This document shows, piece after piece, positions 2,345 through 32,948 of a stretch of DNA of 64,000 nucleotides. Made by a program: the position numbers and the translations under genes. Numbering within the stretch: position 1 is the stretch's first letter; each line of letters starts with the position of its first letter. Where the stretch lies: positions 1-64,000 of the IMG/VR virus record IMGVR_UViG_3300032242_002454. One strand, 5' to 3'. The notes below the pieces were generated by a model. The model was not told where the DNA came from and did not search any database. It saw only the letters and a program-made list of their open reading frames with translations.

Positions 2345-3378
2345 TCACATATCTTAGAAGTAGTTCTTATGGAACACATTCTATGTGTCCTCAACAATAT
2401 TTTTTTGAATATATTCTTGGTTTAAGATCTCCATCTAATAAAAAAGCAGACAAAGGAACTATTTGTCATAAAGCTTTAGAAATCTTAGCATTTATTAAAC
2501 TAAATACCCAAAACAATAATCCTATTTTTGAGGATGACGTTGTGGGAAAAGTGGATATCAATAATTATAGCATCAAAAAAATAACTGATCAAGTATATGA
2601 TTATTATACTTCTCAATTTACTCATCATGTTTGGGAACCAAAAGATCATAAAGATTGTCATGCATGGATTAATAAAGCCTTAGAATATAATAAGGGTATG
2701 TTTGATCCTAGGAATAGATATATCGTTCAGCCAGAGCAACGCTTTGATATTGAAATCAAGAAACCTTGGTCCTCTTACCGATATGAAACTAAAGACGGAA
2801 TCCTTGAAGGTAATCTTGCTATAAAAGGTACTATTGATCTTATTACTAAAGTCAATGATAATACATTAGAAGTTATTGACTGGAAAACAGGACGAAGACT
2901 AGATTGGGCCACTGGAGAAGAAAAAACTTTAGAGAAATTACAAAATGATCCTCAGTTAAGAATATACCATTATGCTATTCAACATCTATATCCAGAAATT
3001 GAACATGTAATGATATCTATTAATTTTATTAATGATGGTGGAGCATTTACTATTTGTTTTGACAAAAATGATTTATACAAAACTGAAATAATGTTAAAAC
3101 AAAAATTTGAAACTATCAAGAATACCCAAAAACCTCAGTTAAATAAAAGTTGGAAATGTAGTAAGCTTTGCTATTTTGGTAAAAGTACATTTGCTAATAG
3201 TACAATAGAGCCATTAACAGAATACAGAGATGGTCAGCTAACAGCTAAAAATCAATGTATGACTAAGTGTGAACAGGTTAAACACGATATAGATACAACC
3301 GGGATGAAAGCAGTCATTGACAAGTATCAGGCTCCCGGTTATAGTATAGGTCACTACAAGGCACCCGGCACCGTATAA
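2338..3378 (+). CDS. PD-(D/E)XK (Cas4/RecB-like) exonuclease, probable non-canonical ATT start
   Basis: GTICH, IKGTIDL, VIDWKTG and QLRIY motifs, with Cys pattern C...C-x2-C...C (Fe-S type). The frame is open upstream to TAA 2323-2325. AAGGAG at 2325-2330 lies 7 nt before ATT 2338 and gives IITYLRSSSY ahead of the track Met. Confidence 0.8.
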   Translation: MIITYLRSSSYGTHSMCPQQYFFEYILGLRSPSNKKADKGTICHKALEILAFIKLNTQNNNPIFEDDVVGKVDINNYSIKKITDQVYDYYTSQFTHHVWEPKDHKDCHAWINKALEYNKGMFDPRNRYIVQPEQRFDIEIKKPWSSYRYETKDGILEGNLAIKGTIDLITKVNDNTLEVIDWKTGRRLDWATGEEKTLEKLQNDPQLRIYHYAIQHLYPEIEHVMISINFINDGGAFTICFDKNDLYKTEIMLKQKFETIKNTQKPQLNKSWKCSKLCYFGKSTFANSTIEPLTEYRDGQLTAKNQCMTKCEQVKHDIDTTGMKAVIDKYQAPGYSIGHYKAPGTV

Positions 3379-3417
3379 CATTTTGGCTAGAACAATTAAA
3401 TAAGGAGACAATTAGAT

Positions 3418-5311
3418 ATGGACATGACTAGAGGATATGTGCCTCTTCATGTCCATTCTTAGGTGGGCTATGTACTCACTTTTGGATGGACTGTCGCAAC
3501 CAAGAACTATTGCTGAACGATGTCAAGAAATCGGAGCAACTTCTTGTGCATTAACTGATCATGGTAATATTGCCGGAGCAGTTAAGTTTTATACAGAAAT
3601 GAAAAAGAAAGGCATTAAGCCTATTCTAGGTTGTGAGGTTTATCTATGTGATCAAGACCCTAAGATTAAAACCAAAGAAAATAAAGACTTGACCCACTTT
3701 GTTATTCTAGCTAAGAATTATGAAGGGTGGAAGAGTCTTATTAGAATTGTTTCTGAGTCTAATCAACCAGATCATTTTTATCATAAGCCAAGACTAGATA
3801 TAGCCTCTTTGGCAAAGTATACTAATGGTAATATTATTGGTTTTTGTGGTCATGCTGGATCATATTTGGCAGATAGGATAACCTCTGATAATCGATTAAT
3901 TGGCGATTGGAAGAATGTTGGTATTGACCAAATTGGTAAATTAAAAGATGTTTTTGGCAAAGAGAACTTTTTTCTAGAAGCACAATTAATGGATTCGGTC
4001 AATTCTCCTATTCAGACACTCTTAACTGGTGCTATGAGAGATTTGGCCAAAATTACCAACACTAAAATCATATCTACGCCAGACGCTCATTATTGCCGTA
4101 AGGAGGACGCTGTAGATCAAAGGGTGCTTCTCTGTAATAATTTAAAAACAACCTTCCCAGAGATCAGCAGGAAGATTAGCAATGATGAGGAAGTGCCTCT
4201 TGGATGCTTTTTTACATCTGACAACTTCCATATCCTATCTCCAGAAGAAATGGGTCATTTTCATACAGAAGAAGAGATGGAGAATACCAAGTTAGTGGAT
4301 GCATTATGTGAAAAATATAATATATTAGATAAGCCACATTTACCCCCATTTCCTTGTCCTGACGGAGCTAATCCAGATGAATATCTAAGGCAATTATGTC
4401 GTAATGGTTGGAGAGATAAAATTGCTAATAATATAGATAAAGATATCCAAGAAGATTATGTGAATCGAATAAAGTATGAATTAGAGGTTCTACAAGGAGC
4501 CGATCTCTCTAGTTACTTTTTAATTGTACAAGATATTGTGAACTATGTCAGGAAAAATAACTGGCTTCCGGGACCGGGAAGAGGAAGTGCGGCTGGTTGT
4601 CTAGTCTCTTACCTGATTGGTATTACTAGTATTGATCCTATTAAGTATGGTTTATTATTTGACAGATTTTATAATGCTGGACGAAATAGTAAAGACCATA
4701 TCTCTATGCCTGATATTGACGTAGACGTACCTATTAATAAGAGAGAAAATGTAATCGAATATATTAAGCAGTGTTATGGGGCTGATAAGGTTTCCCAAAT
4801 GATTACATTTAATACTATTAAGGGTCGTGGTGCTATTAAGGATGTATTGAGAGTTTATGGTAATATATCATTTGATGAAATGAATAAGATCACTAAAAGT
4901 ATTCCAGATGAAGCTAAAATTGCCGACGATCTTCAAGAAATGAAAGAAGAAACTGGGGAAGCATCTATTATTCGGTGGGCATTAGAAAATGAGCCAGATA
5001 AACTGAAAGAATGGTGCTATATAGATGAAAAAAATGAATTACAAGGACCGCTTGCCAAAAGATTTGAACAGGCTATTAGATTAGAAGGAACTAAGTCTAA
5101 TCAGTCCAAACATGCGGCTGGTATTGCTATTAGTTCTAAACCATTAAATACATTGTGTCCTATGGTGTACGATTCAAAAAACGATCAGCTTATAGCTGGT
5201 ATGGAAATGCAAGATCTAGAAGCGTTAGGCATTATCAAATTTGATATTCTTGGCGTGGCAATGTTAGATAAAATTATGACTATCCAAGACATCTTATCAA
5301 AAGGAGATTAA
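3418..5311 (+). CDS. dnaE: DNA polymerase III alpha (DnaE) N-terminal chain (PHP + palm); inferred join(3418..3459,3470..5311) across a 10-nt coding gap
   Basis: An AAGGAG SD precedes ATG 3418, giving MDMTRGYVPLHVHS then TAG. The +1 frame resumes MYSLLDG at 3470. PHP motifs TDHG, GCEVY and DAHY are present, as are GPGRGSAAG, MPDIDVD and KFDILG. No intein ends are seen. Confidence 0.9.
3451..3491 (+). promoter_or_regulatory. 41-nt mRNA hairpin covering the dnaE coding gap (candidate recoding/translation-control element)
   Basis: GUCCAUUC(3451-58) pairs with GGAUGGAC(3484-91). A 2x2 U-U internal loop follows, then AGGUGGG(3461-67) pairs with CUCACUU(3475-81). The 7-nt loop CUAUGUA contains AUG 3470. 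Pairing was worked out by hand. Confidence 0.6.
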
Positions 5312-5312
5312 T

Positions 5313-5510
5313 ATGGCAATGCAAAAATTCATGGATATAGCAATCGGTACTGTTTTTAAGCATGAAGGTAATGATTATCGAAAAATCCCAGAAGAAAGAA
5401 TAAGTTGTTGTTCGGCCATTAATGCTCAAGGAGTACATAATGCCCAGCAAAGAATTCAGGTTTTACCATTGGTGGAAGTCGAAGTCCTAGGAGATAACAC
5501 TCAAGCATGA
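5313..5510 (+). CDS. Small hypothetical protein (65 aa, beta-rich, SCC motif)
   Basis: Fills the gap between dnaE-N and the exonuclease and overlaps the latter by ATGA coupling. Confidence 0.75.
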   Translation: MAMQKFMDIAIGTVFKHEGNDYRKIPEERISCCSAINAQGVHNAQQRIQVLPLVEVEVLGDNTQA

Positions 5511-6208
5511 TCAATTATAACAAAATTTGCGTTTTTGATTTTGAAACCGATGGTTCTGATCCTAAATCTTGTAGCCCGGTACAAATTGCAGCAATAATTA
5601 TTGATCCACTAAAATTGGAAATTGTTCCTAACTCTGAATTTAATATCTTTTTTAAACCAGAGGTATTGGCAAATGATGAACAATATCAATATACTACAGA
5701 TATTTTGGATTTTCATGCTAAGGTAAGAGGCTCTTCTAAAGAAGCTATTTTAGAAGAATGGAAAAAGTATCCAGCTCAAGATCAGTCTTGGAAATTGTTT
5801 ACAAACTATTTAACAATGCATCATACAAGATCCAGCAAAAAGAGCCAGTTTAGTGCTCCTATTGCTGCTGGTTACAATATAAATAGATTTGACTTGCCAA
5901 TTATTGATAGATTGAGTCGTAAATATGGTAATACAAATAAGGAAGAAAGAAGCGATATTTTTTATCCAAGAGACGTATTAGATATTATGAACCTAGTCTT
6001 CTATTGGTTTGAAAATAATGGAGATCTCAAAAATCTTTCTCTGGATACTCTTAGAGATTATCTGGGCATAAATAAAGAGGGTTCTCATGATGCTCTAAAA
6101 GATGTTAAAGATTGTGCAGAAATTCTGATTCGTTTTATGAGACTACATCGTAACCTAGGAAATAAGATTAAGTTTAAGGACTCATTTCAGTCACCATCAC
6201 ATGTCTAA
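5507..6208 (+). CDS. DEDDh 3'-5' exonuclease (Pol III epsilon-like proofreader)
   Basis: ExoI VFDFETDG, ExoII GYNINRFDLP, ExoIII HDALKD. Confidence 0.9.
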   Translation: MINYNKICVFDFETDGSDPKSCSPVQIAAIIIDPLKLEIVPNSEFNIFFKPEVLANDEQYQYTTDILDFHAKVRGSSKEAILEEWKKYPAQDQSWKLFTNYLTMHHTRSSKKSQFSAPIAAGYNINRFDLPIIDRLSRKYGNTNKEERSDIFYPRDVLDIMNLVFYWFENNGDLKNLSLDTLRDYLGINKEGSHDALKDVKDCAEILIRFMRLHRNLGNKIKFKDSFQSPSHV

Positions 6209-7832
6209 AAAATTTCAATACAGTTGTGGATGTTCTTTTGACATTATATCTGAACATGACGATAAGGATAGAATGACTCTTAGATTTAATCCTAAAATAG
6301 AAGAGATAAGTTTGGAGTGTCAAAAGACTTGGGATCTAATTTCAGATGGAAATACTAAGGGGTGTTTCCAGTTGGAGTCTAGACTTGGTAAGTCTATGGC
6401 TAAAAAACTAAAGCCAGAAAATATAGAACAGCTATCTGCCTTAATTAGTATTATGAGGCCGGGTTGTCTAGAAGCTTTTAGAGATGGCAAATCAGTTTCT
6501 AATCATTTTATAGATAAAAAGAATGGTCAGGAGTCTGTAGACTATTATCATCCCTCTTTGGAGCCTATTTTAAAGGCAACGTATGGTGAAATGATTTATC
6601 AAGAACAAGCTATGGAAATAGCTAAGATCGTAGCTGGTTTTGATCTTCAGGAAGCAGACATGTTAAGAAAAGCCATTGGTAAAAAGAAACCAGAAGAAAT
6701 GGCTAAAATTAAGATTAAGTTCTTAGAAGGTACAGAAAAAGTAGGAACAGTGGCTACTTCTCAAGCAGAAGAAATTTTCGGCTGGATTGAAAAGTCTCAG
6801 AGATATTCTTTCAATAAATCTCATGCTGTTAGTTATGCTATTAATAGTTATTTGTCAGCTTATACTAAAGCTCATTTTCCCAAAATATTTTTTGCTGCAT
6901 ATTTAAGATTTGCAAAAGATAAAATTGATCCTAAAGCAGAAATTAAAGAATTGGTACAAAACGCTAACGAAATGGATGTTCCTGTTTGTATACCAGATAT
7001 TAGAAACTTAAATCAACTATTTATTCTTAAGAATAATAAGATCTATTTTGGACTAACAGATATTAAAGGTTTTGGACAATCTGTATTTGATAAATTAGTC
7101 AAACTCAAAGAAGATAAGAAGCTAGACTTCGATACTATGAATTGGATAGAAATGCTTATGATGGTTTTGATCAATATCAACTCCACATCTGCTAAAGCTC
7201 TAATTCAAAGTGGAGCAATGTCATATTTGGGTAAGAATAGGGTGGCCATGTTATTTGAATTTGGTTTAGTCTCAGAATTAACTAAGAAAGAATCAGATTT
7301 CATCATAGCTAATCTCTATAAATATAAATCAATAGGAGATGCTCTTCACGATCTATATCATAATGGTAAGTCTAATAAGAATAGAAAAGCTATTATACTA
7401 GACCTAATTAATAGTTATAATAAACCCCCATATTCTTTAGAAGATAATCCAGATTGGATCGCTGATGCGGAGGATTCATTTTTAGGATGTAGTATTACTT
7501 GTTCCAAGGTTGATATGTATGATATTACTATGACCAATACAACTTGTAAAGACTTTAAAAATACCACACTCAAAGATAATATTTTGTTGTGCGGAGAAAT
7601 TGAAAGTGTGGGTGTTACTAAGACCAAATCTGGCAAGACTCCGGGACAAGAGATGGCATTTGTTACTATGAGTGATGGAACAGGGGTAATTGAGTCTGTT
7701 GTATTTTTTCCAGAAGCCTACAAAGCTTATCGAAATATTTTATTTGATGGTAATGTTATTATCGTAAAGGGGAACAAAGCAAAGTCTGGTGATTCGTTAA
7801 TAGTTGAAAAGACGTATATTCCCAAAACTTGA
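6201..7832 (+). CDS. dnaE: DNA polymerase III alpha (DnaE) C-terminal chain (fingers, HhH, OB fold)
   Basis: GCFQLES, IMRPG, TYGEMIYQEQAM, ADMLRKAIGKK, YSFNKSHAVSYA, FGLTDIKG and the OB-fold MAFVTMSDGTG. Confidence 0.92.
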   Translation: MSKKFQYSCGCSFDIISEHDDKDRMTLRFNPKIEEISLECQKTWDLISDGNTKGCFQLESRLGKSMAKKLKPENIEQLSALISIMRPGCLEAFRDGKSVSNHFIDKKNGQESVDYYHPSLEPILKATYGEMIYQEQAMEIAKIVAGFDLQEADMLRKAIGKKKPEEMAKIKIKFLEGTEKVGTVATSQAEEIFGWIEKSQRYSFNKSHAVSYAINSYLSAYTKAHFPKIFFAAYLRFAKDKIDPKAEIKELVQNANEMDVPVCIPDIRNLNQLFILKNNKIYFGLTDIKGFGQSVFDKLVKLKEDKKLDFDTMNWIEMLMMVLININSTSAKALIQSGAMSYLGKNRVAMLFEFGLVSELTKKESDFIIANLYKYKSIGDALHDLYHNGKSNKNRKAIILDLINSYNKPPYSLEDNPDWIADAEDSFLGCSITCSKVDMYDITMTNTTCKDFKNTTLKDNILLCGEIESVGVTKTKSGKTPGQEMAFVTMSDGTGVIESVVFFPEAYKAYRNILFDGNVIIVKGNKAKSGDSLIVEKTYIPKT

Positions 7833-17167: not shown

Positions 17168-17642
17168 GCATAATAGGACCCCATTTATCGGCGGGACATT
17201 TTTGATCTCTGTGAGCAAGCTTGTTTTTATGATTAGCATCCCTTACCACGGTACATCCACATAATAAACAAGAACTATCTTTAAAATACTCACATGTTTT
17301 ACAAATAGCTAATCTTTGATCTATTTCTTCTTCAGAACACATATTTGCTGGAGCATTTTTAACTGATTCATCATTTCTAATTGCTTCTTTTTTAATTTGA
17401 TCTAATAAAATATTATTCATATCATTAGGACTAGAAAGATGTACCGGTTTTTCTAGATTAGGATCATTAATATGATTAGAGTGTATTAAATGAGCTAAAT
17501 CTTCTATTTTTTTAAAACACATTATCTTAGTGTCAGGATTTTCTAAGCCCATAGTTAAACCACAATATTTACATTTATAAAGTGGTTTATTATTAAAACT
17601 TGATCCTAAGCTCTCTAAATCACAATAAGCTGTTTTATTCAT
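17151..17642 (-). CDS. Cys-rich protein with C-terminal DUF6171-like domain
   Basis: QRLAICKTC...CLLCGC...CPADKW; N-terminal CKYC. Start overlaps the upstream stop (TAATG). Confidence 0.7.
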   Translation of the reverse strand: MNKTAYCDLESLGSSFNNKPLYKCKYCGLTMGLENPDTKIMCFKKIEDLAHLIHSNHINDPNLEKPVHLSSPNDMNNILLDQIKKEAIRNDESVKNAPANMCSEEEIDQRLAICKTCEYFKDSSCLLCGCTVVRDANHKNKLAHRDQKCPADKWGPIMPSLPS

Positions 17643-20600
17643 TAGTTAGGTGGCCTGTTATTTGTCTTTTTTCCTGCTTTACAACAATAGTTAGTATCAT
17701 TACATGTTGGAATATCAGTATTATAACATTGTGGAGTATTATCGCAATCTGATGTTTTATATATTTCTGTTGTATTAATTGATCCTGTAGGACAAGATCC
17801 TTTGATTCTATCACATTTTTCTCTTATTGCATCTGTTTTTAAAGTATCTTGTATGGTTCTTGGTCTACGATATTCATAAGTATAATATGCTACTTTATAT
17901 GTAACAGTTGAGGATTTGAGTTCAGGATTAGTTATGGTTGCTCTATATCTTATAGCAGGATAGGTGATGTCTGTATAGAGTACTGAACTACAAAAGCCAG
18001 GAACAATTCCTTCTACAATATCATTTTCATTTAATGATGTATTATTATGACAAGGAGCGACATTCCTTAGAATCTGTTCCATTTGCTCTTGCCATATTTG
18101 TAACTTTCTATTTTGTGCTACAGGATTAGCTGCTGGAAAAAATACTGGAATATCGCATCCGGAAATAATGGCTCTTGAACGAGCATTGCCACCAACACAA
18201 ATTTTGGGAGCATCTAAAGAAAAGGATATGCATGTGGTCCAAGGAAAAGAGTCTGGGGCTTCTTTGCCACACTGACCAAAACCAGCACTAGTATAATCTT
18301 GGGAACCGCAAGCAATATCAGAACATCCATTACAAGTTCCACAACCTATAGTTTGTGAACCAACAGCTATTAATGCTTCGGTATTAGCGTCAGCGCTATT
18401 TAAAAAATATCCCAAAATACAGGTTCTAGTCTCAGTTATTATATCCCAAGTTTGTGTTTGTGCTGGCATAGTTATTTTATTCGGTTCAACTCCACAATTA
18501 TCACAATTGCTAGATATTGAATCTGAAATTGTAAAACTATCATCTGGTACTGTAATTTTAATTACAGGACAATTATCTCTAATACTATGAGATATGCAGT
18601 GGGATGGTCCATTAGGTAAATTAATAGTTAATGAATTATTATCATAATTAATGGAACATAAATTTGTAGGACAAATTGGATTATATGGTGTTATTGAAGA
18701 TCTAGTCACAGCATCATAAATATACCATGTAGCCGGTGCTCCTGTGTCGCATTCTATCCAAGCACATTCTTCTGTTATATCTCCTCCTATCTCACCTAAT
18801 TTACCATTTATAGCTCCATTTCCACTATAATCTCCACAAGAATCTAGCGGAGTTACTTTACGAGCATCTTCATTTCCATATTTAATTCTTCTTTTATGTC
18901 CTTTTAATTGTATTTGATATCTACAATATTCAAAATTGTAATCAAATTCATTATATTCATATCGTGAAGGTCCACCTGTGGCATTGGGTCCAGAAGGAAT
19001 ACATCCGCATTGGCCATTACGACAATATCCATATTCCCAATCCGCACAATCACAATGATTTTCATTATCTCCCGCAGCTGGAGGATATGATCTACCACTT
19101 ATAGCATCATAATATAAATTTTTAGTTAAAGGATCTATATAACTATCTGTAAAACAAGTACCACAAGATGGTTCAGAAACAGCTCTTAAACTACCTACTC
19201 CTAGTGGATGACTAATAATTCTACCTCCTATACCCAGCTCTAAAGAACGTGTTATTGATGAGTTGCTAATACTACCTTCAACATAGCACTCTGATTCAAA
19301 AACATTAAAAACTCCTCTTGCATATCCTCCTAATTTTATATTACTAGATGTTTGTGTTAATATTTTGCAGTTTGGTCCTATAAGATCTTTTACAGAATCT
19401 CCTATTCCCATATTAGTACATGTATATTCTGGTGGAGCATATGCTATAGTACCTACGCATCCGACTGCTGGTATGTATCGTACGACATATCCTGGAGGAC
19501 TTCCATAGTCTGGATTACAGTCTGGATAAGGAGTACCCGGTTTCCAAAGAGCAGCAGTACACGGGGCACCTTTTTCCCAATATGGTAATTTTAAATCATA
19601 TCTGGTTATTCCATCACAATCAAATGCATTATATAATGTTCCCTTTGGGTGTTGTGCCATAAAACCAACACTATGACTGGCTATTTCTTGACATGTTGTT
19701 AAAAAATCATATCTAGTAGTATTTGTACTATTTAATTCTTGATCTGATACTGCCATAGTATGATTATCTATATATTCTGTATGAATAACACTCTCAATAG
19801 TTTGACCATCTACTACTGCTATTATTTTAATTTTTCCATCAACACTTGCTACTCTAATAGAAATATTTTTATTTCCAATAGTTACTGATACTGCTTTTCC
19901 TATAGTTAATTTACCCTCAATTGATAATGATCCAGAAATTTTTCTATTGCTAGAAGATGCGTTTGTATCTAAATTATATGGAATATTTTTATAGATATCT
20001 TTTGCTTCTATTTTAGGATCGGTATATTTAATTAGATCATTGAATTTAATTGGTTGAGTAGTATGATCATCTATAGTTTTTAAATTGATTTTTTGTTTTT
20101 CTCCATACATCATACGAAATAACATCTCATTTGCTAATATATCTGTATTTTTTACTATTTCTGTATGATCTTCTACTATACTATCTCTCATGATAGCCTG
20201 ATATTCTTCATTTAATACTGATATTTTATTTATAGTTGGTCGAGGAGATATATTTGAATTACAATTATTGGTTGTAAATAATGTATTTTTAATATTTGTA
20301 GGATCTAATTCTAATCTTTGTATATAGTATAATTCATGATTACCGATAGGATTATAGATACCAGCATCATAAGATATTATATATGGAATATCATTAAGTT
20401 CTTTGGGCAAGGATATAGTTTTTGGCATTTGAATATGATATATTCCACTAAAAGCTACAGAACCAATAGTGTTTATCCCACAACCAACGCTATTACATCC
20501 TTCAACTCTATCGGTGTCTCCATAAACTGGCATTTTAATAAAAGGAGTACTTTTATATTCAGTATTATTAAAGTGGTCAAAATCAAATGTTATTGATTGA

Positions 20601-23600
20601 AAAGTTGTTGAGTTAGTTGGTACTACAGGTTTAAAAGTACCTCCAGCACGTATTCCCTGATCATTAATAATACTATTAGATTCTACAGAATATAATTGAA
20701 AAGGAACATCATCTACTCTTAATGTATTTGTATAAAAAATTTGATCTTTTTTAATGGTTAATGCTGATTTCAATTGATCATCTTTTTTCTGCAAATCTAT
20801 AAAAAATAATGGTTTTTCATCAGGATTTAGATAATTTTTTTCCCACTCATGATCAGCATCTAGATTTTTATATATTCCACTAATTTGAACAACACCAGAA
20901 TAGATATAAGATTGATTCTGTAATAAGTTTTTTAGTACTGATACATCTTTTATTAATAAATCTTTTAGTACTGGCTTTAAATTTTCTCTAACGGAATTCT
21001 CATATTTACCAGAATCTGGTATAAAATTAATATCCATAAATGGTAAATAGTTATTATAGTCTCTAAAAGTTTTTTTGACTATAGAATTATTTCCATCTCC
21101 AATATTGTATTTTTGATGAATAACATATGAGGTTTGACCATCATAGGTAATTAGAATATTTTTATCTTTATTTTTTTGATCCTTGATTTTAAAATTATAG
21201 TTGTATAAATTATTATTAGCATTATTAATAATTGTTTTGAAAAATAAGTTCTTATACAGACTGTCTGGATAAAAATCTCGTAAATATCCAGTATTATAAA
21301 TATATTGTCCTAGTTCATTAGTTAACTTGCCATCAAAATTAATCAAATCTCCCCATTTAGTACTATATATGGGATTTCTTAATAGCGGATCATATTCACT
21401 TTTTAAAGCTTCTGATATGTCTTGATAAATAATTAAAGAATCAATGCCCATCTTAATATCTTCTGATCTATCAAAAATATCCCCTAAATTTGCAGCATTA
21501 TCAAGGGTTATTTGTGGTATTTTTCCTAGAAAAGTAAAATCTAAATTACCTATATTATATTTTACTTTAGCATCTAATACAAATTCTGTATATATTTTTA
21601 AATATTTATCATGAATATTGTCATTATAACTTAATTTATTTCCATCTTTATCAACATATATTGCATAAATACTTTTCTTTATAATTTTGCCGATATATGA
21701 TAACTTTGGGTTTTCACTTGAACTTATCAGAACTTTTTGATCACAATTTTTTGTAGTATTATGGACATATCCAACTTTATTTTTACGATTGTAATCAATC
21801 TGTAACTCGGTAAACTTAGTATTTAAACGACTAGTATTATCCTCAGTATGCTCTGCTACAAAAAAATAAGGCCGAGAACCTTCTATAACTATTTTAGTTT
21901 CATCTCTACCTCTTAAAAACCGAGTATTAATAATCGGATAATAAGAAGTATTATTTCTTTGTGTATTAAATAAGTCGTATGTAAAATTATAGAAAAAATT
22001 AAAGTCTAGGTATTCTTTAGTAGATACTGGTAGAATTGGTCCCGATAAATCTGTAGAACTATCTTTTTTCACATATTCAAATAAATATGGTTTACCAATA
22101 TACTTTTTGCCATCTTTAAAATATCCAAAAATATTAGGATCATTATATTCCCACCACTGATTTTGTATATTTAAATAAAGTCTAATTTTTTTATGACTAT
22201 TTAATTCTCCTATTTGTCGTAATGTTTCTTTAAGCTTATCGTTCATTTCTCCGATAAGCATTGTGCCATCTTGGAATTCTTCTTGTTCTCTAAATACTTC
22301 TTTATCATAATCAATATATGAAGTTAAATTATTACTATCTCTAACAACTGATGTTTTATCAGTTTTATCGCTATTATAGATCAATCCAGTATTAGGATGA
22401 AAAAATCCTTTTTTAAGAGTTCCCATTTGTACTGGAGCAGGAACTGCAAAATTTAACATTTGCTTGCGAGGAATTCTCTCAAACTTTATCATTAGGTCGA
22501 TACTTTGATCTCCTAGTGTTCCAAATACGGTATTAGTTGAACAAAAATTCCCTATTGGAGGATATAAAATCAAATTATCATTTCCTGCTAAAGCTTCTAA
22601 ATAAGGATTTACTAAGACAGCAGTAACAGCAGAGGCTGATGCTCCTCCCTTTAATATGAAAGGTTTTTTCTGTTTATCATAAATTAAGATATCATTTAGA
22701 CTAACACGAGTAGCAAATCTTTGGTATCCTATATTTGGAGAAGGTGTCCACTCTAAATTTCCATCCTCATCAAAAGTTTGAGAATAACTTGTTGTTTTAA
22801 ATAAATCAACATTCTCGATAACTTCTGCCCAAACGTCGGCATGAATAGTGTTATAAGAAGGTAATGAGAAATTCCATTCTGTTTTAACATAATTAGGAAA
22901 ACTAACAGTTACCGACTGAGAGCATCCATATGGTTGTTCTGGATCTATTTTTTGATCTAAGCTAGCTAAAGAAGATCCTATACTTGGATGATGAGGTATC
23001 CTGCTATTATCTAAAAGTTGAGTAATATAATTTTCAGAATACCCACCATAAGCTTTAAAAACTGGACCATTAGCTGTTGATAAGTTAGGAGTAAATAATA
23101 ATGGTTCATTACTATAGGTAACCTCTCCATCTTGTCCACAAACATGTGGATATTCTGTTACTGTATTAATAGAGAAACATTGACATTCATTTTTATTAGG
23201 GAAACCTAAGCATTCATAGGTGCTAGGATCAGAACCTCTTAATTTTTCTATATTTAAACCATAAATTTTAATACCAACATCTTTAGTAGTAAAAGTTATA
23301 CGACACTTACCCGCTGTTAAAGAAGGAGTAGCTTTATTAAAAATTGTACTATTATTCGCACCAAAAACTTTACTATCATAGTAAACACCACCCTGATGAT
23401 GAAATGCAGCTTTATCAATACGAGGATTCATTATCGCAGCATGATATTTTCTTTGATCATAAAGACTGCCATCAAGAATAGTTCTTCCTGGTCTTGTTCC
23501 CTCTATTAATCCTTCGCTATTGTTATTAAATCTTGCATCAAGTTCATCACAAAAACTACTATCTCCTTCAGAGCCAGAACAAATAGTAGGATTTAATTTA

Positions 23601-25666
23601 ACAGCTAATTTATAAGATGATCCATCTTCACAAGTAGAACATGATCGAGTAGAATCTTTTATAAATGGTCTGGGATAAGTATTTTGAAATGTCGAACAAC
23701 CAGTAAAATATACTAGTTCTTTTAACAAGTGATCATTTAAAAAAATACCAGCCATACTAGCTGATTTTGTTGTAGTTATATCTCCATTAGTACTATTACA
23801 AGCTGAAGCATATCTTTTTCTAGTATTTGTTTTACTTTCTATTTTTAGATTACCTAACTCGATAGTTTGATCATATGAAAATGATTTAAATTGTGAATTA
23901 GTATGATCGGCACAATCTACTTCAGATGAGCAACCTCCCAATAATCTTCTAGTGTCTTTTATTTTTATTCCCATATCAAAACTTAAATCTACATAGGATT
24001 GAGCACTGATATCTTTTGTAAATTCTAATATAGAAGTTGTATTAGCATCACACCATAAATAAGATCCATATTTATTAGCGAGGGTATGTATTAGTTCCTC
24101 TTGAGAAGAAATAAAATTCATATGACTTGCAGAATCAATAAGACTAGTAGACATATCTTTATTCATCTGATCTCTTTGTCTATAGTCATTAATAGGCTTG
24201 ATAGGCTGCTGATCTTGATCTAATTGTTCGGGGTCTAAGTCCGTAGTTTTTAATAAATCTACCACAACAGCATCGTATTGAGGTGCAGTACTGAGCAAAG
24301 CTGCCAACTCAAATTTTTGCAGTGTGGTCATTGAGTTTGGTTTTTTAACTGACTGCTTATCTGCATTATCTATACGATTATAAATGTCTCTCATAAGAGG
24401 ATAAAGATTAGCAGAAATATATGTGAAAGATGAACCAGATGGAATAACTCCTATCACTGTAGAGTCTTTGATCAGTTTAATACCAGAAGGGCAAGTATTA
24501 ATAACTGGAGTGCCATCTTGTGATGCTGGAACAGTATCAGATAGTGGTTCTGGACCATCATTTTTAGCATAAAAAACATCTCCGGGAGATATGTATAAAT
24601 CTATGCCAGGGATTGGCCTATTATCATTCTTCCTATCTTTATCATAATATCTATACCATCCAATGATACCAGAAGAATAATTCCATCTCCAATAAGAAGC
24701 TAATTTTTCTGTTTTTACAAAAATATTATTATATGTAGTTTTAGCAAATCCATAAGGAACATCACTAAAATCTTTGACAGAGGGTAAGAGGGTGGTGACA
24801 TCGCTAGATACAGTTGACTCTGGTAGAGGATATTCTGTGGTGTCTACCTCAGAGTCTTCTCCCATTAATCCACTAAATAAATCATCAGAAGTATATGAAA
24901 CTGATCCTTCATTATTTAATTTGGTAAGAATAAAATGTCCACAAGTACTCCCAGTTTGAAGATATTTTTTATATGCTTTATTATGGTCATCTATATTATC
25001 ATACTGAGAAGTAATAGAATCGTATGGTATTTCACCTATTCTAGGCTTAAGTTCCCAGTCTATACATAATTGAGGCGTAGATGAATTATTTGTGAAACTA
25101 TTAAGTGGTTTATTGCTGCCATCTCCAAATTTAATAAATTTATCAAAACCTAATCCAGAACCAATAGCAGGAAACTGTTTCATATGTTTGAAATCATAAA
25201 ACTGATCTACATATTTCTGGTTCAGTATGGGTATTTTTGGCAAATAATCATCTTTGTCCATTCTAATATCACAAGCCCCATTGCAACAATTAGAAGATAA
25301 TTTATAAGATTCATTTCCTTGAATATCTTTTAGTTTCCAAGAAACAGTGTGGTCTTTATTATTGTCTAATGAGGAACAATAAGAACAACGAAAAGAATCA
25401 AGAGATTCAATTTCATCATAATTCGTAATGACAGGAGAACAAGAACAAGGATTAAAAGCAGCATTTAAAGTAGAATCAGGCTGGGATAGCAAATCACCAT
25501 ATTTAATGGTAGAATTTTTCTTATAAATAACAATAGGTTTCCATAAGCCACTAGTTTTTTGATCAAATGGAGAAAGAAGAGTTGTTAATGATGCCATATC
25601 AATAACAGCAGTACTAAAATCTGTATCTGATAAAAAAGACTTATTAAATATGGAGCAACAACTCAT
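17642..25666 (-). CDS. Giant Cys-rich protein (about 2674 aa), probably virion-associated
   Basis: Uninterrupted 8-kb ORF at the end of the structural operon with Cys-dense N- and C-terminal regions. ATG 25666 is preferred over TTG 25681. Confidence 0.8.
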   Translation of the reverse strand: MSCCSIFNKSFLSDTDFSTAVIDMASLTTLLSPFDQKTSGLWKPIVIYKKNSTIKYGDLLSQPDSTLNAAFNPCSCSPVITNYDEIESLDSFRCSYCSSLDNNKDHTVSWKLKDIQGNESYKLSSNCCNGACDIRMDKDDYLPKIPILNQKYVDQFYDFKHMKQFPAIGSGLGFDKFIKFGDGSNKPLNSFTNNSSTPQLCIDWELKPRIGEIPYDSITSQYDNIDDHNKAYKKYLQTGSTCGHFILTKLNNEGSVSYTSDDLFSGLMGEDSEVDTTEYPLPESTVSSDVTTLLPSVKDFSDVPYGFAKTTYNNIFVKTEKLASYWRWNYSSGIIGWYRYYDKDRKNDNRPIPGIDLYISPGDVFYAKNDGPEPLSDTVPASQDGTPVINTCPSGIKLIKDSTVIGVIPSGSSFTYISANLYPLMRDIYNRIDNADKQSVKKPNSMTTLQKFELAALLSTAPQYDAVVVDLLKTTDLDPEQLDQDQQPIKPINDYRQRDQMNKDMSTSLIDSASHMNFISSQEELIHTLANKYGSYLWCDANTTSILEFTKDISAQSYVDLSFDMGIKIKDTRRLLGGCSSEVDCADHTNSQFKSFSYDQTIELGNLKIESKTNTRKRYASACNSTNGDITTTKSASMAGIFLNDHLLKELVYFTGCSTFQNTYPRPFIKDSTRSCSTCEDGSSYKLAVKLNPTICSGSEGDSSFCDELDARFNNNSEGLIEGTRPGRTILDGSLYDQRKYHAAIMNPRIDKAAFHHQGGVYYDSKVFGANNSTIFNKATPSLTAGKCRITFTTKDVGIKIYGLNIEKLRGSDPSTYECLGFPNKNECQCFSINTVTEYPHVCGQDGEVTYSNEPLLFTPNLSTANGPVFKAYGGYSENYITQLLDNSRIPHHPSIGSSLASLDQKIDPEQPYGCSQSVTVSFPNYVKTEWNFSLPSYNTIHADVWAEVIENVDLFKTTSYSQTFDEDGNLEWTPSPNIGYQRFATRVSLNDILIYDKQKKPFILKGGASASAVTAVLVNPYLEALAGNDNLILYPPIGNFCSTNTVFGTLGDQSIDLMIKFERIPRKQMLNFAVPAPVQMGTLKKGFFHPNTGLIYNSDKTDKTSVVRDSNNLTSYIDYDKEVFREQEEFQDGTMLIGEMNDKLKETLRQIGELNSHKKIRLYLNIQNQWWEYNDPNIFGYFKDGKKYIGKPYLFEYVKKDSSTDLSGPILPVSTKEYLDFNFFYNFTYDLFNTQRNNTSYYPIINTRFLRGRDETKIVIEGSRPYFFVAEHTEDNTSRLNTKFTELQIDYNRKNKVGYVHNTTKNCDQKVLISSSENPKLSYIGKIIKKSIYAIYVDKDGNKLSYNDNIHDKYLKIYTEFVLDAKVKYNIGNLDFTFLGKIPQITLDNAANLGDIFDRSEDIKMGIDSLIIYQDISEALKSEYDPLLRNPIYSTKWGDLINFDGKLTNELGQYIYNTGYLRDFYPDSLYKNLFFKTIINNANNNLYNYNFKIKDQKNKDKNILITYDGQTSYVIHQKYNIGDGNNSIVKKTFRDYNNYLPFMDINFIPDSGKYENSVRENLKPVLKDLLIKDVSVLKNLLQNQSYIYSGVVQISGIYKNLDADHEWEKNYLNPDEKPLFFIDLQKKDDQLKSALTIKKDQIFYTNTLRVDDVPFQLYSVESNSIINDQGIRAGGTFKPVVPTNSTTFQSITFDFDHFNNTEYKSTPFIKMPVYGDTDRVEGCNSVGCGINTIGSVAFSGIYHIQMPKTISLPKELNDIPYIISYDAGIYNPIGNHELYYIQRLELDPTNIKNTLFTTNNCNSNISPRPTINKISVLNEEYQAIMRDSIVEDHTEIVKNTDILANEMLFRMMYGEKQKINLKTIDDHTTQPIKFNDLIKYTDPKIEAKDIYKNIPYNLDTNASSSNRKISGSLSIEGKLTIGKAVSVTIGNKNISIRVASVDGKIKIIAVVDGQTIESVIHTEYIDNHTMAVSDQELNSTNTTRYDFLTTCQEIASHSVGFMAQHPKGTLYNAFDCDGITRYDLKLPYWEKGAPCTAALWKPGTPYPDCNPDYGSPPGYVVRYIPAVGCVGTIAYAPPEYTCTNMGIGDSVKDLIGPNCKILTQTSSNIKLGGYARGVFNVFESECYVEGSISNSSITRSLELGIGGRIISHPLGVGSLRAVSEPSCGTCFTDSYIDPLTKNLYYDAISGRSYPPAAGDNENHCDCADWEYGYCRNGQCGCIPSGPNATGGPSRYEYNEFDYNFEYCRYQIQLKGHKRRIKYGNEDARKVTPLDSCGDYSGNGAINGKLGEIGGDITEECAWIECDTGAPATWYIYDAVTRSSITPYNPICPTNLCSINYDNNSLTINLPNGPSHCISHSIRDNCPVIKITVPDDSFTISDSISSNCDNCGVEPNKITMPAQTQTWDIITETRTCILGYFLNSADANTEALIAVGSQTIGCGTCNGCSDIACGSQDYTSAGFGQCGKEAPDSFPWTTCISFSLDAPKICVGGNARSRAIISGCDIPVFFPAANPVAQNRKLQIWQEQMEQILRNVAPCHNNTSLNENDIVEGIVPGFCSSVLYTDITYPAIRYRATITNPELKSSTVTYKVAYYTYEYRRPRTIQDTLKTDAIREKCDRIKGSCPTGSINTTEIYKTSDCDNTPQCYNTDIPTCNDTNYCCKAGKKTNNRPPN

Positions 25667-25674
25667 TTTATTTC

Positions 25675-28600
25675 CTAACAATTAACTGACTGTAATACCC
25701 AAGATCCATTAATAAAAACAAACATTCCTAAGTCTCCAGCAGAAACATTAAAACCCATGGGATTATTATAATTGGTACGATACATAATAGGGATGGGTAT
25801 TGGTGCGGGAGAGTCTGTTGACGTAGTGTTTGCTGTCATGGCGGTTGTATCTTGATAAATCTGATATATAGATACATCTGTATCTCCTTGAATAACTCCA
25901 GAAGTCATGTAGTGTTTATTATAGATGGGTTCATAAAATCCATTTTGACCATTGTATTTACAATAAACTGGAGCACCTCTGGGTACACAAACAATATTCA
26001 AGTTATCTTGAACGAATACTAATTTTCTTAAACCACTTGGTAATGGATCATTTGTATATGAATCTTCTATAATAGCTCCTCTAGAAGGTTGTCTATTTAC
26101 TAAATCAGTTTCTAAAACTACCCAAATTGGTTTATAATTAGCTCCTACTGTCCACACTCCTGCATTAGCATCCCACCTTAAATCAACTGGCCCGACTGGC
26201 CAAGTGCTAGGTAATTGTCCCCAGCCTTTATAAAACTGATGCTCTTTATATGGAGCTGTCCAAGTTCCGTCGGGTTTTTGGCTTTGGTTTTTGTATATGA
26301 TTTGTTTGGTTCTTGTGTCTCTAACTATTTCTCCATTAAGAACCTTTGGTTCACCAGAAGCATTAGGTACAGGATAACCTTCTAAGTCATAACCCCAAGC
26401 ATGAACCATTAAAGGTCCACGTAAACCAAAATATCTCATATTGTTAGCAGGAGTAATACCTGGGGCAATTCCTCGTTTACTACAAAACTCCATATAGTTC
26501 TGGTCATAATCCAAAAAACTACGTTCTATATTTTTTGAATATGCTGGCTTTAATCCATTATAGCCTTCAGGAATTGATAAACCCTGACCAATTAAATCTA
26601 TACTATGACCAGTTTTATCAGTGAATTGTCTATTAGGAAAACTACTAAACTCACCAACAGACATTAATACAGGATTTAATGTTCCATAATTAATAATTGG
26701 ATTACCACTTAATCCATTAGGTAGTCCAGAAGAATTTCTACTAATTAAAGTTAGATCATCTCCACTAGCTAAAATATAAGGTGGATTAGTTTCTTTTGGA
26801 GATGCTGAAACCAAAGCTTTTTTAGTTTTATCTTCTATAGTTTCACAAAAAGGACAATCTACTTCTTTTTCGATTGCGGCATTAGTTATTGTACTAACAT
26901 TAACAGTAGTCAAAGGATTATCAGGATCTAAATACTTATACCTATATTTTGCAGTTCCTTGACAAAATGGACATCCTGGCCTAGGATACTTAGTAATACT
27001 AAAGGTGGATCCGTGCGGAGTTGGATAAAATGAAATAGGAGATAATATTCCATCTAAACTCATCATAGATTTATTTTCATATCCTTTTTCAAATTCTCTA
27101 GGTAATTCTTGAACGTCCTGTAAAGAAACATTCGTTGATTCCCTTATCATATTTATAGGGTCATATGATATGTTTTTGGTCGTAAAAGGCATTTTAGACC
27201 AACCGGGAGAATAATTTAAATCTTTGTAAATATCAGTTATTGTACTATCTGGACGAACAATAGTAGCATTAGATCCAGCCAAAATTTCAAATGGACTCCA
27301 TCTTAAAAACTTAGGAGTATTGTTTTCGTTGGGTATATTAAAAAGATTTCCAAAATATCCTTGATTACTTAGTGTTGGACCATATTGTGGCCCATTATTT
27401 AATGTGTTTAATACTCCCATTAAGCTGGTGCTTATTTCTTTTCTTCTTTTTAGTGATTCTTGACCTATTTCTTTTATTCTATCTGCATTTTCTTTATTAT
27501 AAAACCCCAATTTTCTAGTATAGGTTCTAAAGTTATAATTAGTAGTTATTCCTCCTTCACCAACCTGAACTTGAATACTACTAATGATAGGACCACCAAA
27601 TGTTTGATTTTCACCTATTAAAGCATCTCCTAAATTAAAAGCTGTTCCTTGAAGACTTGTTAATAATGCTCCAGGAACTTGAATAGAACCTTGTTCAGTA
27701 ATTTGTTGATAATTAACATCATCTTTAATTCTTGCCATAACCGCAGCATCTAAAGCATCCATACCACCATAATTCCACGGAACTAATCCAGCATCATGCT
27801 GAACCTTAACGCTCCCCACAAGATTATTAACAGATGATGGTACGTCTAAAACTCTACTATCAAAGATTTTCTCTTCTATTAGTCCAGGATGATTGGTCCA
27901 TGGCCCATATGTGGCCATTGAACTTTCAAGTGGTATAGCAGCAAAGTATGGGTAAGCTGCTTTTTCTAATATATGCATATTATCTGATGATAGGTTCGAA
28001 TCTTGACCATTACTATCTAAAAATACTTCCCTTTGTAGACCAGGATATAAAAATGCTGCCAAGACAGTTCTTGGATCCCAAGTCAAAGTAAAAGGATATC
28101 TGCGCAATCCTCCATTAACTGTTGAATTGGTATTAATATCTACTGGATTTTTTACTGGAGAAGGTATTGTGGAATCTCTCAGCATTTTCAGTAAAAAATC
28201 TTGACTTATAATATGGTTTAATTCTTTATCAGCTATATTTCTACCATTACCCATTTTAACTGGTGAAGATATTTGTATTACTACTCTAGCATCAGTTACA
28301 TCCCCATTTGGTAATGCTTCCATAAAAACAAAATCTTTTTCACAATTAGCTTTAACATATGTTTTACTAATTTGTTTACTAACTTTACTATTTGCTCCAG
28401 TACTAGTTCCTATAGGAAATCCGTGAGCTGTGCGAAAAGCTACAGAATTTGCAAATCCACCAGTATATATGTCAATATATTCTTCTGGAGGCAAAGAATG
28501 ATTAATAGAACCATAATAATTATTACTTTCTTCTAAGGCATCATTTGCATTCCGACTATTTAGTAAAAATCTCCAATCTGTGACTAAATGAGATTTGCCA

Positions 28601-31307: not shown

Positions 31308-32948
31308 TTAATCTGTTATGCACCTGATCCATTCCCATCCTTTAATTTTAGTGAATCTTCCTTCTGATGGATTCCAGGTTGAACTATCTTGTTTGATATA
31401 AGATTTTACACCACCGTTGATTGGATTATATGACATATTTCCGGGATTAAAAGCTTCCACCGCACCTGTAACAGCATTAAAATGTTCTATTGGGAATGCT
31501 AGATTTTTTAAGCCTGTAGGTCTAGGAAATATAACTTCAAAAGTAACATTTCTAGAAGCAGCAGTAATTGTACCTAAATCTTGTAAAATAGGTCCAAGTT
31601 TACGACCAAGAACAAAAATAGAAGCAATAACAGGTATGGCAGAAGTATCTTCTACTGTTAATGTTTCACTAATTGATCCTGGAATTAAATTAATAGGTCT
31701 ATTATTAAAAGTCCAACTATAAGTAACAGTACCTTCTGATGGATTAAAGCCTTCTTGAATATTAAATGGAATGGGATTCATTGCATTTTCATATCCATTT
31801 GGTCGGTTTCTATCTGACTTAAATTGATCTTTAAATAGAGGAGGAAAAAAGCTGCGATCTCCCGTATTTGCAAAACTATTTGCTCTATTCAACATTTCTA
31901 TTTTGACACCACTATATCCACTAATAGCAGCAATAAATTTATTATTATAGTCTTTATCATTTTTAGTAAATGAATTATGCAAAGTAGCTAATGAGCCGCT
32001 TAATCCACCAGTAATATAGGTAACTGAATTAGTATCGTATATATTACCACTTTGAAAAGGTTCTAAACCTTTAATACTTCCATTAATAACAACTGTTCTT
32101 AGCATGGTATTGTCTAGAGTATTCTCTACTGAGAAAGTTTCTATATATCCGAGTGCATTACCGGGCATACCTAGCCAAGTATCTGTAATTTTATAAGAAC
32201 CTTCAGTATCACTAACATTAATGCTTCTAACAAAATTATATAGAGTTAAACCTTTATCAATAACTCCTGTATATTTGGGGGTTTGACTAAGATGAAAATT
32301 TACCCAGTCTTTTGCCCCACTAACTGCACTTAATCCTGATCCTCCTATTCCAGTTCCTGTGGGTATAAATTTACCAACTGCTCCTAATGTTCTAGTGATA
32401 CGATATAGTGGATAAGCTAGTCCAGCATCATATTTAGGACTACCAAAACCCAAAGAACCAAGAATAAGAGGAGATCTAGCAGTCCAGTTATATTCATCTA
32501 TAGTTTCTATTGTATAGTCATCTTGTGTTTGACTAACATGAAAAATACTATTAGAAGCATCTTTTACTTCTGATTGTAGTTCTATACTATAGTCAATAGT
32601 ACTTGTCCAATTATTATCAGTTTTACTAGCACCATATTTACTAATCTTAATTCCAGAATATACTATATTAGTAGTAGAAGTATTATCTCCACAACCAATA
32701 GTTAAATTTTGTCCATCTATTGAAAAAGTATTTCGTAATCCACTTTCTAAGATTAACAAATTATTAAAAGCAGTGACTCCGCTTCCGCTATAAATTTGAC
32801 CTTCTAAAGTAATAGTAACAGTAGCACCAATAGCTTTACCAGCTCCATCTCTTTGTTGTTCTTTAGAGATACTTATTGATGGAACAGGATATCCACTAGC
32901 TCCTTTAAAACTAAAGTCTCCATATTTTATATATGATGGTGTTGCCAT
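31308..32948 (-). CDS. Putative distal tail/tail-tip protein (546 aa)
   Basis: Beta-rich with repeated tube-like strands (TITLEGQI, GTVTYSWTF); position after TMP and fibre. Confidence 0.55.
   Translation of the reverse strand: MATPSYIKYGDFSFKGASGYPVPSISISKEQQRDGAGKAIGATVTITLEGQIYSGSGVTAFNNLLILESGLRNTFSIDGQNLTIGCGDNTSTTNIVYSGIKISKYGASKTDNNWTSTIDYSIELQSEVKDASNSIFHVSQTQDDYTIETIDEYNWTARSPLILGSLGFGSPKYDAGLAYPLYRITRTLGAVGKFIPTGTGIGGSGLSAVSGAKDWVNFHLSQTPKYTGVIDKGLTLYNFVRSINVSDTEGSYKITDTWLGMPGNALGYIETFSVENTLDNTMLRTVVINGSIKGLEPFQSGNIYDTNSVTYITGGLSGSLATLHNSFTKNDKDYNNKFIAAISGYSGVKIEMLNRANSFANTGDRSFFPPLFKDQFKSDRNRPNGYENAMNPIPFNIQEGFNPSEGTVTYSWTFNNRPINLIPGSISETLTVEDTSAIPVIASIFVLGRKLGPILQDLGTITAASRNVTFEVIFPRPTGLKNLAFPIEHFNAVTGAVEAFNPGNMSYNPINGGVKSYIKQDSSTWNPSEGRFTKIKGWEWIRCITD

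Follow-up and report, generated by a model that had tools for sequence, protein, structure and literature searches.

Natural programmed translational bypassing, in which ribosomes skip a block of non-coding nucleotides within a gene, is known from very few systems, namely the gene 60 family of phage T4, the mitochondria of Magnusiomyces and a candidate in Streptomyces phage Hau3. One of these is T4 gene 60 with its mobA homing-endonuclease cassette, which is inserted in the topoisomerase II large-subunit gene (Manning & Atkins, bioRxiv 10.1101/2022.08.31.505936; Wills et al., bioRxiv 10.1101/2024.12.09.627546). In the terminase gene of Hau3, two 10-nt blocks have been proposed to be bypassed, supported by mass spectrometry in E. 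coli with the codon changed to UAA (PMC10732093). Low-level hops over stop or hungry codons have also been described in E. coli, though these are unprogrammed and inefficient, whilst the byp elements of Magnusiomyces mitochondria are 27-55 nt in length and depend on features of the mitochondrial translation system.

Here we examined the 5' region of a phage dnaE gene within a 64,000-nt stretch of DNA (positions 1 to 64,000 of IMG/VR record IMGVR_UViG_3300032242_002454), hereafter the window, in which the first 14 codons of the replicative polymerase gene are separated from the remainder by a stop codon and a short coding gap. In both T4 gene 60 and this locus the take-off codon is followed directly by a stop codon and lies in the 5' side of a stem-loop whose upper part begins at the stop, and a separate 5' stem-loop can form behind the ribosome, whereas it is less clear whether the landing triplet of the dnaE element counts as matched. 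In both, the gap interrupts a highly conserved metal-binding motif of an essential replication enzyme, is linked with an HNH endonuclease that is progressively lost while the bypass is kept, and has a patchy distribution, as if mobile. The dnaE element differs in that its gap is 6-12 nt instead of 50 nt, the proposed hop occurs at codon 13-14 with almost no nascent peptide, and the tRNA is Ser (UCY), not Gly (GGA). Its 5' hairpin contains the start codon itself and abuts the take-off codon, its two hairpins share a strand and have nearly equal predicted stability, the landing and resume codons sit in the hairpin loop, and an SD-like motif is not universal. Neither similarity to the gene 60 cassette nor any DNA match to other GenBank phages was detected.

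In common with Hau3, a short, roughly 10-nt, frame-disrupting block is found in an essential phage gene, with flanks that are contiguous in relatives and local secondary structure that brings the landing codon near the take-off site. In Hau3, however, the trigger is the rare sense codon UUA, which acts as a sensor of host tRNA, rather than a stop codon, only 3 terminase genes carry it, and no endonuclease link or large natural series of variants was reported. As in the E. coli hops and the byps, peptidyl-tRNA would detach and re-pair at a non-overlapping codon, and one variant of the dnaE element (TCT TAA TCT, in locus L063; L numbers denote individual fetched loci) has the form of the classic 6-nt hop over a stop, though here dedicated, conserved RNA structures surround the site.

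Organization of the dnaE 5' region

The first-pass annotation of this sequence had described a 10-nt coding gap embedded in a hairpin within the PHP motif of DnaE, and each of its sequence statements was confirmed; the 10-nt bypass in a Streptomyces phage terminase that it mentioned is the one proposed for Hau3. The features of the region are listed in Table 1. A Pfam search identified PHP and DNA_pol3_alpha domains in the downstream ORF, with the PHP match commencing at profile position 8 with residue 2, so that the first 7 profile positions are missing, which is what P-L-H-V-H-S plus Met would supply. The two pieces of the protein were analysed separately throughout. The frame of the downstream ORF is formally open from ATG 3437 (624 aa).

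Table 1. Features of the dnaE 5' region, in window coordinates. Stem-loops are predicted, and the take-off, landing and resume roles are proposed.
Feature	Position	Strand	Description
Spacer	3379..3417	+	Between the PD-(D/E)XK nuclease gene (stop at 3376-3378) and ORF1
Shine-Dalgarno	3402-3407	+	AAGGAG, within the spacer
ORF1	3418..3459	+	Opens at ATG 3418; 14 sense codons, MDMTRGYVPLHVHS; first PHP strand with the H-x-H metal ligands
5' stem-loop	3418..3456	+	AUGGACAUGA (3418-3427) pairs with UCAUGUCCAU (3447-3456); inner stem pairs 3430-3434 with 3442-3446
Take-off codon	3457..3459	+	UCU (Ser14)
Coding gap	3460..3469	+	10 nt, UAGGUGGGCU; stop UAG at 3460-3462; landing triplet GCU at 3467-3469
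Upper stem of take-off hairpin	3461..3481	+	AGGUGGG (3461-3467) pairs with CUCACUU (3475-3481), 7 bp; loop at 3468-3474 holds the last two bases (CU) of the landing triplet, whose G closes the stem, and the resume codon
Whole take-off stem-loop	3451..3491	+	Lower stem of 8 bp pairs GUCCAUUC (3451-3458, including the first two bases of the take-off codon) with GGAUGGAC (3484-3491); 2x2 U/U internal loop
ORF2	3470..5311	+	Opens at ATG 3470 (resume codon AUG), MYSLLDG..., 613 aa, stop at 5309-5311; N-terminal half of DnaE, comprising the PHP domain minus its first strand plus the polymerase core

Neither a near-identity DNA search with 2.1 kb nor a distant search with the 106-nt element retrieved any match among GenBank phages, and the best protein matches were only 34% identical, such that no cultured relative or host could be named. 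PHROG scans of ten other window ORFs did not identify the phage type, and no tRNA genes were present in the window. An alternative genetic code was rejected, since TGA, TAA and TAG all end long ORFs in the window, and reading TAG as sense in frame 0 does not give the motif.

Conservation and variation of the coding gap

The same layout was found in 110 fetched loci, representing 37 distinct sequences and 25 take-off/gap types, whilst 58 close relatives had an uninterrupted H-x-H-S-x-[Y/F]-S-L-L-D-G motif. Precise removal of the gap restored the motif with the spacing seen in 58 of 58 ungapped relatives. The gap identical to that of the window (TAGGTGGGCT) was present in contigs from several different metagenomes. 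ORF1 was 13-14 codons long in every element, and Y-x-P-L was kept with synonymous variation, as in the ungapped N-termini.

Gap lengths of 6, 8, 9, 10, 11 and 12 nt were observed, covering all three frames. The gap always commenced with TAA or TAG directly after a TCY serine codon (TCT or TCC), and a relaxed scan of viral contigs permitting any take-off codon and TGA/TGG returned only unrelated chance matches. A scan of representative bacterial and archaeal genomes gave 4 chance matches and no element, and hence no clue as to the host. The gap always ended in NCN, this triplet being TCT in 13 types, TCA in 4, TCC in 1, GCT in 3, GCC in 1 and ACT in 3, that is, a serine codon in 18 of 25 types. 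In the window, however, the landing triplet GCU matches the take-off UCU in only 2 of 3 positions, and ACT-type relatives are similar. Several variants lacked a start codon for the downstream ORF: loci L055, L063 and L068/L074 had no ATG, GTG or TTG in the downstream frame, whilst in L186 and L193 the same gap as in the window was followed by CAT or GAA, respectively, instead of ATG.

Predicted RNA secondary structures

Two stable, mutually exclusive hairpins sharing GUCCAU were predicted. The take-off hairpin, which the first-pass annotation had described correctly, scored -19.3 kcal/mol (z = -5.9), with 0 of 200 shuffles as good. The first-pass annotation had missed an equally stable 5' hairpin, made of the start codon and the HVH codons (-19.7 kcal/mol, z = -5.0). 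Over the 37 elements the 5' and take-off hairpins averaged -17.7 and -17.6 kcal/mol, respectively, against -2.4 and -4.0 kcal/mol in the ungapped controls. Rfam gave no match.

The outer 9 bp of the 5' stem were paired in 33 of 33 distinct elements, with A-U/G-C covariation (GC 17, AU 15, GU 1). Part of the locus set was collected with a pattern that required the 5' hairpin arms, which inflates their apparent invariance, though in the unbiased protein-based set 21 of 22 gapped loci fitted the pattern and the 22nd (L063) had compensatory changes. The H-V-H codons are moreover constrained by both protein and RNA, hence their conservation alone cannot be assigned to either. The take-off stem-loop was predicted in 36 of 37 elements, and the upper stem folded in the same manner in 32 of 33 elements, with compensatory changes such as UAGAGA/UCUCUA, UAGCGA/UCGCUA and UAACGA/UCGUUA. 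As MAFFT columns could not hold the upper stem in one register owing to the differing gap lengths, its covariation was counted per sequence, anchored on the Tyr-Ser-Leu codons. The lower stem was 99% paired, but both strands were invariant and covariation was therefore uninformative. Synonymous sites of GAT GGA C were fixed in gapped loci but not in ungapped ones, and the element-specific synonymous constraint ended about 21 nt after the Tyr codon, where the lower stem ends. The SD-like AGGUG noted in the first-pass annotation was not universal, with variants carrying UAGAGA, UAGCGA or UAACGA lacking it.

Association with an HNH endonuclease gene

In the 58 ungapped relatives, dnaE starts a few bases before or after the nuclease stop. 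In contrast, the spacer of four gapped loci (L033, L044, L104 and L085) held a 253-aa HNH gene whose last codons overlap ATGGACATGA, and truncated copies were present in L106 and L091. An HNH endonuclease gene, full length or truncated, was found directly upstream only in gapped loci and in 0 of 58 ungapped loci. The window itself has no endonuclease. The distribution of the element was patchy on the DnaE tree, requiring at least 9 gains or losses, and appears to be that of a mobile element. Neither the endonuclease link nor this distribution had been recognised in the first-pass annotation.

Proposed translational bypass and alternative explanations

The comparative data favour a programmed translational bypass, a short ribosome hop at the 5' end of dnaE, which had also been the leading suggestion of the first-pass annotation; its further suggestion that the element gates polymerase production is still a hypothesis. 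We consider this reading well supported by sequence comparison, though the hop itself, the role of each hairpin and the immunity function are inferred. In the proposed scheme, ribosomes would start at the AUG of ORF1, translate 14 codons and stall with peptidyl-tRNA(Ser) on the take-off UCU in the P site and UAG in the A site, where the upper stem of the take-off hairpin would occupy or block the A site and hinder release. The anticodon would then let go of the take-off codon, and the just-translated CAUGUCCAU would leave the exit side and re-pair with AUGGACAUG (the start-codon region), re-forming the 5' hairpin and drawing about 9-10 nt of mRNA through the ribosome. The peptidyl-tRNA would re-pair with the landing triplet, which is GCU here and a true serine codon in most relatives, and decoding would resume at the AUG of ORF2. 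The product would be one polypeptide with the canonical PLHVHS-M-YSLLDG PHP motif. Only 14 residues would have been made at take-off, and from the sequences alone no peptide signal like that of gene 60 can be recognised. The same logic is established for T4 gene 60/mobA and proposed for Hau3.

The element belongs to a cassette that in some relatives still carries an HNH homing-type endonuclease directly upstream. Its likely origin is a selfish insertion whose coding gap alters the endonuclease's target in a highly conserved stretch of dnaE without altering the protein, the phage of the window having lost the endonuclease and kept the bypass.

It is unlikely that the gap is decoded rather than skipped. 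A stop codon in the A site with nearby structure is the classic setting for +1 frameshifting, which in the window would give HVHS-RWA-MYSLLDG, whilst relatives would use -1/+2 shifts, or stop-codon readthrough, which is formally possible in the 7 types with an in-frame gap (6, 9 or 12 nt). All of these would insert 2-4 extra residues into a PHP motif whose H-x-H-S-x-[Y/F]-S spacing is invariant in the ungapped relatives, and closely related elements sharing the same two hairpins would need three different mechanisms. The frame offset of 0, +1 or +2, depending on the variant, does not fit a fixed +1 shift of the prfB type. Furthermore, the gap sequence covaries with the Ser-Leu codons as RNA, not as codons, and the serine-like landing triplet would be unexplained.

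Termination followed by re-initiation, with a released 14-residue peptide that either complements the PHP domain in trans or is dispensable, is similarly disfavoured. In the window the AUG of ORF2 follows the stop by 7 nt and AGGUGG lies just upstream, yet GGUGG is only 3 nt from the AUG, and the start codon is absent in the five loci or locus pairs noted above. ATG is simply the commonest codon at that motif position in ungapped relatives, and Y-x-P-L in ORF1 stays under protein-level constraint.

Removal of the gap from the mRNA by endonucleolytic excision and re-ligation guided by the hairpin also appears improbable. The gap does lie in a conserved, stable predicted hairpin and RNA processing cannot be excluded by sequence, but excision of 6-12 nt from one strand of a stem seems to be without precedent in bacterial or phage mRNA, and nothing in this model requires a stop codon as the first triplet of the gap, a TCY codon before it or a serine-like triplet at its end. 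No RNA ligase was identified among the window ORFs that were scanned, although many ORFs were not scanned. Finally, an assembly or sequencing error, or a decaying pseudo-N-terminus with an enzyme that works from the Met of ORF2 alone, is contradicted, even without the raw reads of this metagenomic contig, by the recurrence of the gap in several metagenomes, the 25 structured variants with compensatory changes and the conserved length of ORF1.

More tentatively, the element may be a minimal bypass module of about 75 nt that is driven by RNA structure, in which two stem-loops compete for the same GUCCAU strand and the 5' stem-loop, on re-forming behind the stalled ribosome, acts as both motor and ruler, moving the mRNA by roughly the length of its 3' arm. 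This would allow landing even on non-cognate GCU or ACU. On this view the module would have arisen independently of T4 gene 60 as the immunity device of a different HNH homing endonuclease, making 'endonuclease plus coding gap' a recurrent strategy, and the toggle could also make polymerase synthesis depend on temperature or translation rate.

Implications

In practice, gene callers will truncate dnaE in these phages, and annotation pipelines should recognise the pattern. If ribosomes hop over the gap, as is most likely, this would be a second, unrelated phage family with programmed bypassing, a very rare way of decoding a gene. It comes with a natural series of mutants, encompassing 25 gap types of 6-12 nt, several landing triplets, compensated stems and one variant with no take-off hairpin, and as the whole element fits in about 75 nt, questions about take-off, the driving force and landing become directly testable. 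It also repeats the gene 60 pattern of a coding gap travelling with a homing endonuclease, which suggests a general route by which such gaps arise.

Sequence features of the dnaE 5' region

Examination of the window confirmed the sequence arrangement reported in the first-pass annotation, in which a 14-codon ORF (ORF1) is followed by a 10-nt gap that begins with its stop codon, after which a second ORF (ORF2) continues for 613 aa. A Pfam search of ORF2 identified PHP and DNA_pol3_alpha domains, with the PHP match starting at profile position 8, so that exactly the first strand of the domain is missing from ORF2 and is present in ORF1. Whilst the downstream frame is formally open from an upstream ATG, this start is not conserved in relatives. 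The window, which represents the beginning of a 204,625-bp IMG/VR contig (locus L073), uses the standard code, as TAA, TGA and TAG all terminate long ORFs. Its GC content is 33.5% and no tRNA genes were found with ARAGORN.

DnaE is also split into two genes, between which lie a short ORF with no family match and an exonuclease gene. This split, with the exonuclease in between, was also present in the gapped locus L033 and the ungapped locus L022, and is hence independent of the bypass element. A near-consensus sigma-70-type promoter (11 of 12 matches) lies inside the 3' end of the upstream nuclease gene, about 70 nt upstream of ORF1, whilst other elements (loci L108 and L136) carry TTGACA...TACAAT in their spacer; the bypass cassette may bring its own promoter. 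Elsewhere in the window, a run of five very large ORFs was noted, of which the 546-aa and 1443-aa ORFs gave no PHROG match.

Coordinates of features in the window and in related loci
Sequence	Coordinates	Strand	Feature
Window	3317-3345		Promoter, TTGACA-17-TATAGT
Window	3402-3407		AAGGAG
Window	3418		ATG opening ORF1, 14 codons, MDMTRGYVPLHVHS
Window	3418-3456		5' stem-loop
Window	3437		ATG from which the downstream frame is formally open
Window	3451-3491		Hairpin reported in the first-pass annotation
Window	3460-3462		TAG stop codon of ORF1
Window	ends at 3469		10-nt gap, TAGGTGGGCT
Window	3470		ATG opening ORF2, beginning MYSLLDG
Window	3470-7832		Split DnaE region
Window	3470-5311		DnaE N-half (PHP plus polymerase core)
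Window	5313-5510		65-aa ORF
Window	5507-6208		RNase_T/DnaQ-like exonuclease gene
Window	6201-7832		DnaE C-half (fingers, HhH, OB)
Window	17642-52389	minus	Run of very large ORFs
Window	17642-25681	minus	2679-aa ORF
Window	25675-31281	minus	1868-aa ORF
Window	31308-32948	minus	546-aa ORF
Window	32977-37308	minus	1443-aa ORF
Window	37321-52389	minus	5022-aa ORF
L085	1496-1587		Element variant with GAC (Asp) in the motif
L037	801-1157		HNH endonuclease paralogue or fragment
L103	3488-3835		HNH endonuclease paralogue or fragment
L008	4785-4916		HNH endonuclease paralogue or fragment
L051	4630-4923		HNH endonuclease paralogue or fragment

Distribution of the element

Searches of GenBank phages retrieved nothing close. 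In contrast, a total of 80 loci whose DnaE N-half is 66-100% identical were retrieved from IMG/VR. Of these, 58 have an uninterrupted M-x(1-3)-Y-x-P-L-H-x-H-S-x-[Y/F/H/M]-S-L-L-D-G motif, with a start codon that overlaps or abuts the stop of the upstream PD-(D/E)XK nuclease gene. The other 22 have a stop and a short gap directly after the serine codon of H-x-H-S. A DNA pattern built on the element identified it in 58 IMG/VR contigs and 34 JGI metagenome contigs, a few of which are chance matches outside dnaE. Together, these searches gave 110 loci with a full element, comprising 37 distinct element sequences and 25 distinct take-off/gap types. The element was absent from 185,579 representative bacterial and archaeal genomes and from all GenBank phages.

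Gap variants and decoding mechanism

Gap lengths, counted from the stop codon to the base before the x codon of the motif, were 6, 8, 9, 10, 11 and 12 nt, represented by 1, 2, 5, 8, 8 and 1 types, respectively. The two ORFs are thus in frame, +1 or +2 depending on the variant, and in every case removal of the gap restores the invariant motif spacing. The codon before the gap is always TCT or TCC and the gap always begins with TAA or TAG; a relaxed scan that allowed any codon and TGA/TGG returned only unrelated sequences. The last triplet of the gap was found to be TCT (13 types), TCA (4), TCC (1), GCT (3), GCC (1) or ACT (3), which is a serine codon in 18 of 25 types, with C in the middle position in all. 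This is consistent with the signature of a peptidyl-tRNA(Ser) that leaves one codon and re-pairs with another. One element variant (L085), with an 11-nt gap and a TCC landing triplet, has GAC (Asp) in place of the conserved Tyr/Phe codon, giving H-D-S-L-L-D-G. ORF1 is always 13-14 codons, and Y-x-P-L is kept with synonymous variation, indicating that ORF1 is selected as protein.

Alternative explanations were less compatible with these data. No single frameshift can restore the motif spacing across the observed gap lengths. Re-initiation is not general, since the gapped loci L055, L063 and L068/L074 have no ATG, GTG or TTG in the downstream frame, and the gap sequence of the window itself is followed by CAT in locus L186 and by GAA in locus L193. 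The AUG at 3470 is thus simply the methionine that many ungapped relatives have at that motif position. The gap is not an assembly error, as the identical 10-nt gap recurs in contigs from several metagenomes.

Predicted RNA structures

Two predicted structures flank the take-off codon. In the 5' stem-loop, AUGGACAUGA, which includes the start codon, pairs with UCAUGUCCAU, which includes the H-V-H codons, and there is also an inner stem. The structure in the window scored -19.7 kcal/mol (z = -5.0), and the outer 9 bp were paired in 33 of 33 distinct elements. One position switches cleanly between G-C (17), A-U (15) and G-U (1), and in L063 an A-U pair becomes G-C.

The second structure is the hairpin described in the first-pass annotation, which scored -19.3 kcal/mol (z = -5.9) in the window. 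The lower stem pairs GUCCAUUC with GGAUGGAC and contains the first two bases of the take-off codon, whilst the upper stem pairs AGGUGGG with CUCACUU and starts at the second base of the stop. The last two bases of the landing triplet, the G of which closes the upper stem, and the resume codon lie in the loop. The upper stem forms in 32 of 33 elements and shows compensatory changes at three positions of the Tyr-Ser-Leu codons, namely AAGUGA/UCACUU, UAGAGA/UCUCUA, UAGCGA/UCGCUA, UAACGA/UCGUUA and UAAGGAAAA/UUUUCUUUA. The lower stem is 99% paired but invariant. Its downstream strand, however, is held at synonymous sites only in gapped loci (GAT in 20 of 20 against 17 of 29, and GGA in 19 of 20 against 11 of 29), and element-specific similarity falls to background right after it.

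Over the 37 elements, the 5' stem-loop and the hairpin averaged -17.7 and -17.6 kcal/mol, respectively, compared with -2.4 and -4.0 for the equivalent regions of ungapped relatives. The two structures share GUCCAU and so cannot coexist. The variant L063 (TCT TAA TCT, a 6-nt gap) has no take-off hairpin but keeps a compensated 5' stem-loop, which suggests that the 5' stem-loop is the core signal.

Inferred bypass mechanism and comparison with known systems

We infer that the ribosome initiates at the ORF1 start codon, opening the 5' stem-loop, and stalls at codon 14 with UAG in the A site, where the upper stem hinders release-factor action. Peptidyl-tRNA(Ser) would then dissociate from UCU, and CAUGUCCAU would emerge from the exit side and re-pair with AUGGACAUG, drawing roughly 9-10 nt of mRNA forward, such that the tRNA re-pairs at the landing triplet and decoding resumes at the start of ORF2. 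This scheme mirrors what has been worked out for gene 60, namely the stop after take-off, the take-off stem-loop, and the 5' stem-loop as driver, although the match between the length of the 3' arm and the hop is our own inference.

On this computational evidence, the element probably works like gene 60 and like the proposed 10-nt bypasses in the phage Hau3 terminase. It is not a member of the gene 60 family, as the gene, tRNA, gap length and position differ and no sequence similarity was found. No report of bypassing in dnaE was identified in full-text literature searches, albeit of a collection that does not cover most subscription journals, and the element is of high interest to the recoding field.

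Association with HNH endonuclease genes

On a maximum-likelihood tree of the DnaE N-half, the gapped state needs at least 9 changes, and well-supported branches force that number. In L033, the space between the nuclease gene and ORF1 holds a 253-aa ORF that matches PHROG endonuclease, HNH and endonuclease VII families (E = 1e-22 to 3e-13), as well as free-standing HNH endonucleases of many phages, and the stop codon of which lies inside ATGGACATGA. Full-length copies of this gene sit at the same place in L033/L107, L044/L098, L104 and L085, whilst truncated remnants sit there in L106/L118/L121 and in L091/L103/L113/L129. Other gapped loci, including the window, have only a 0-100-nt spacer, and none of the 58 ungapped loci has the gene there. 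Further paralogues or fragments of the same HNH endonuclease family occur 1-2 kb upstream of dnaE in several relatives, both gapped and ungapped, which points to other homing sites in this replication module. The distribution of full-length, truncated and absent copies is the decay series described for mobA and the gene 60 bypass, and suggests a homing cassette whose gap may alter the endonuclease target in a conserved stretch of dnaE.
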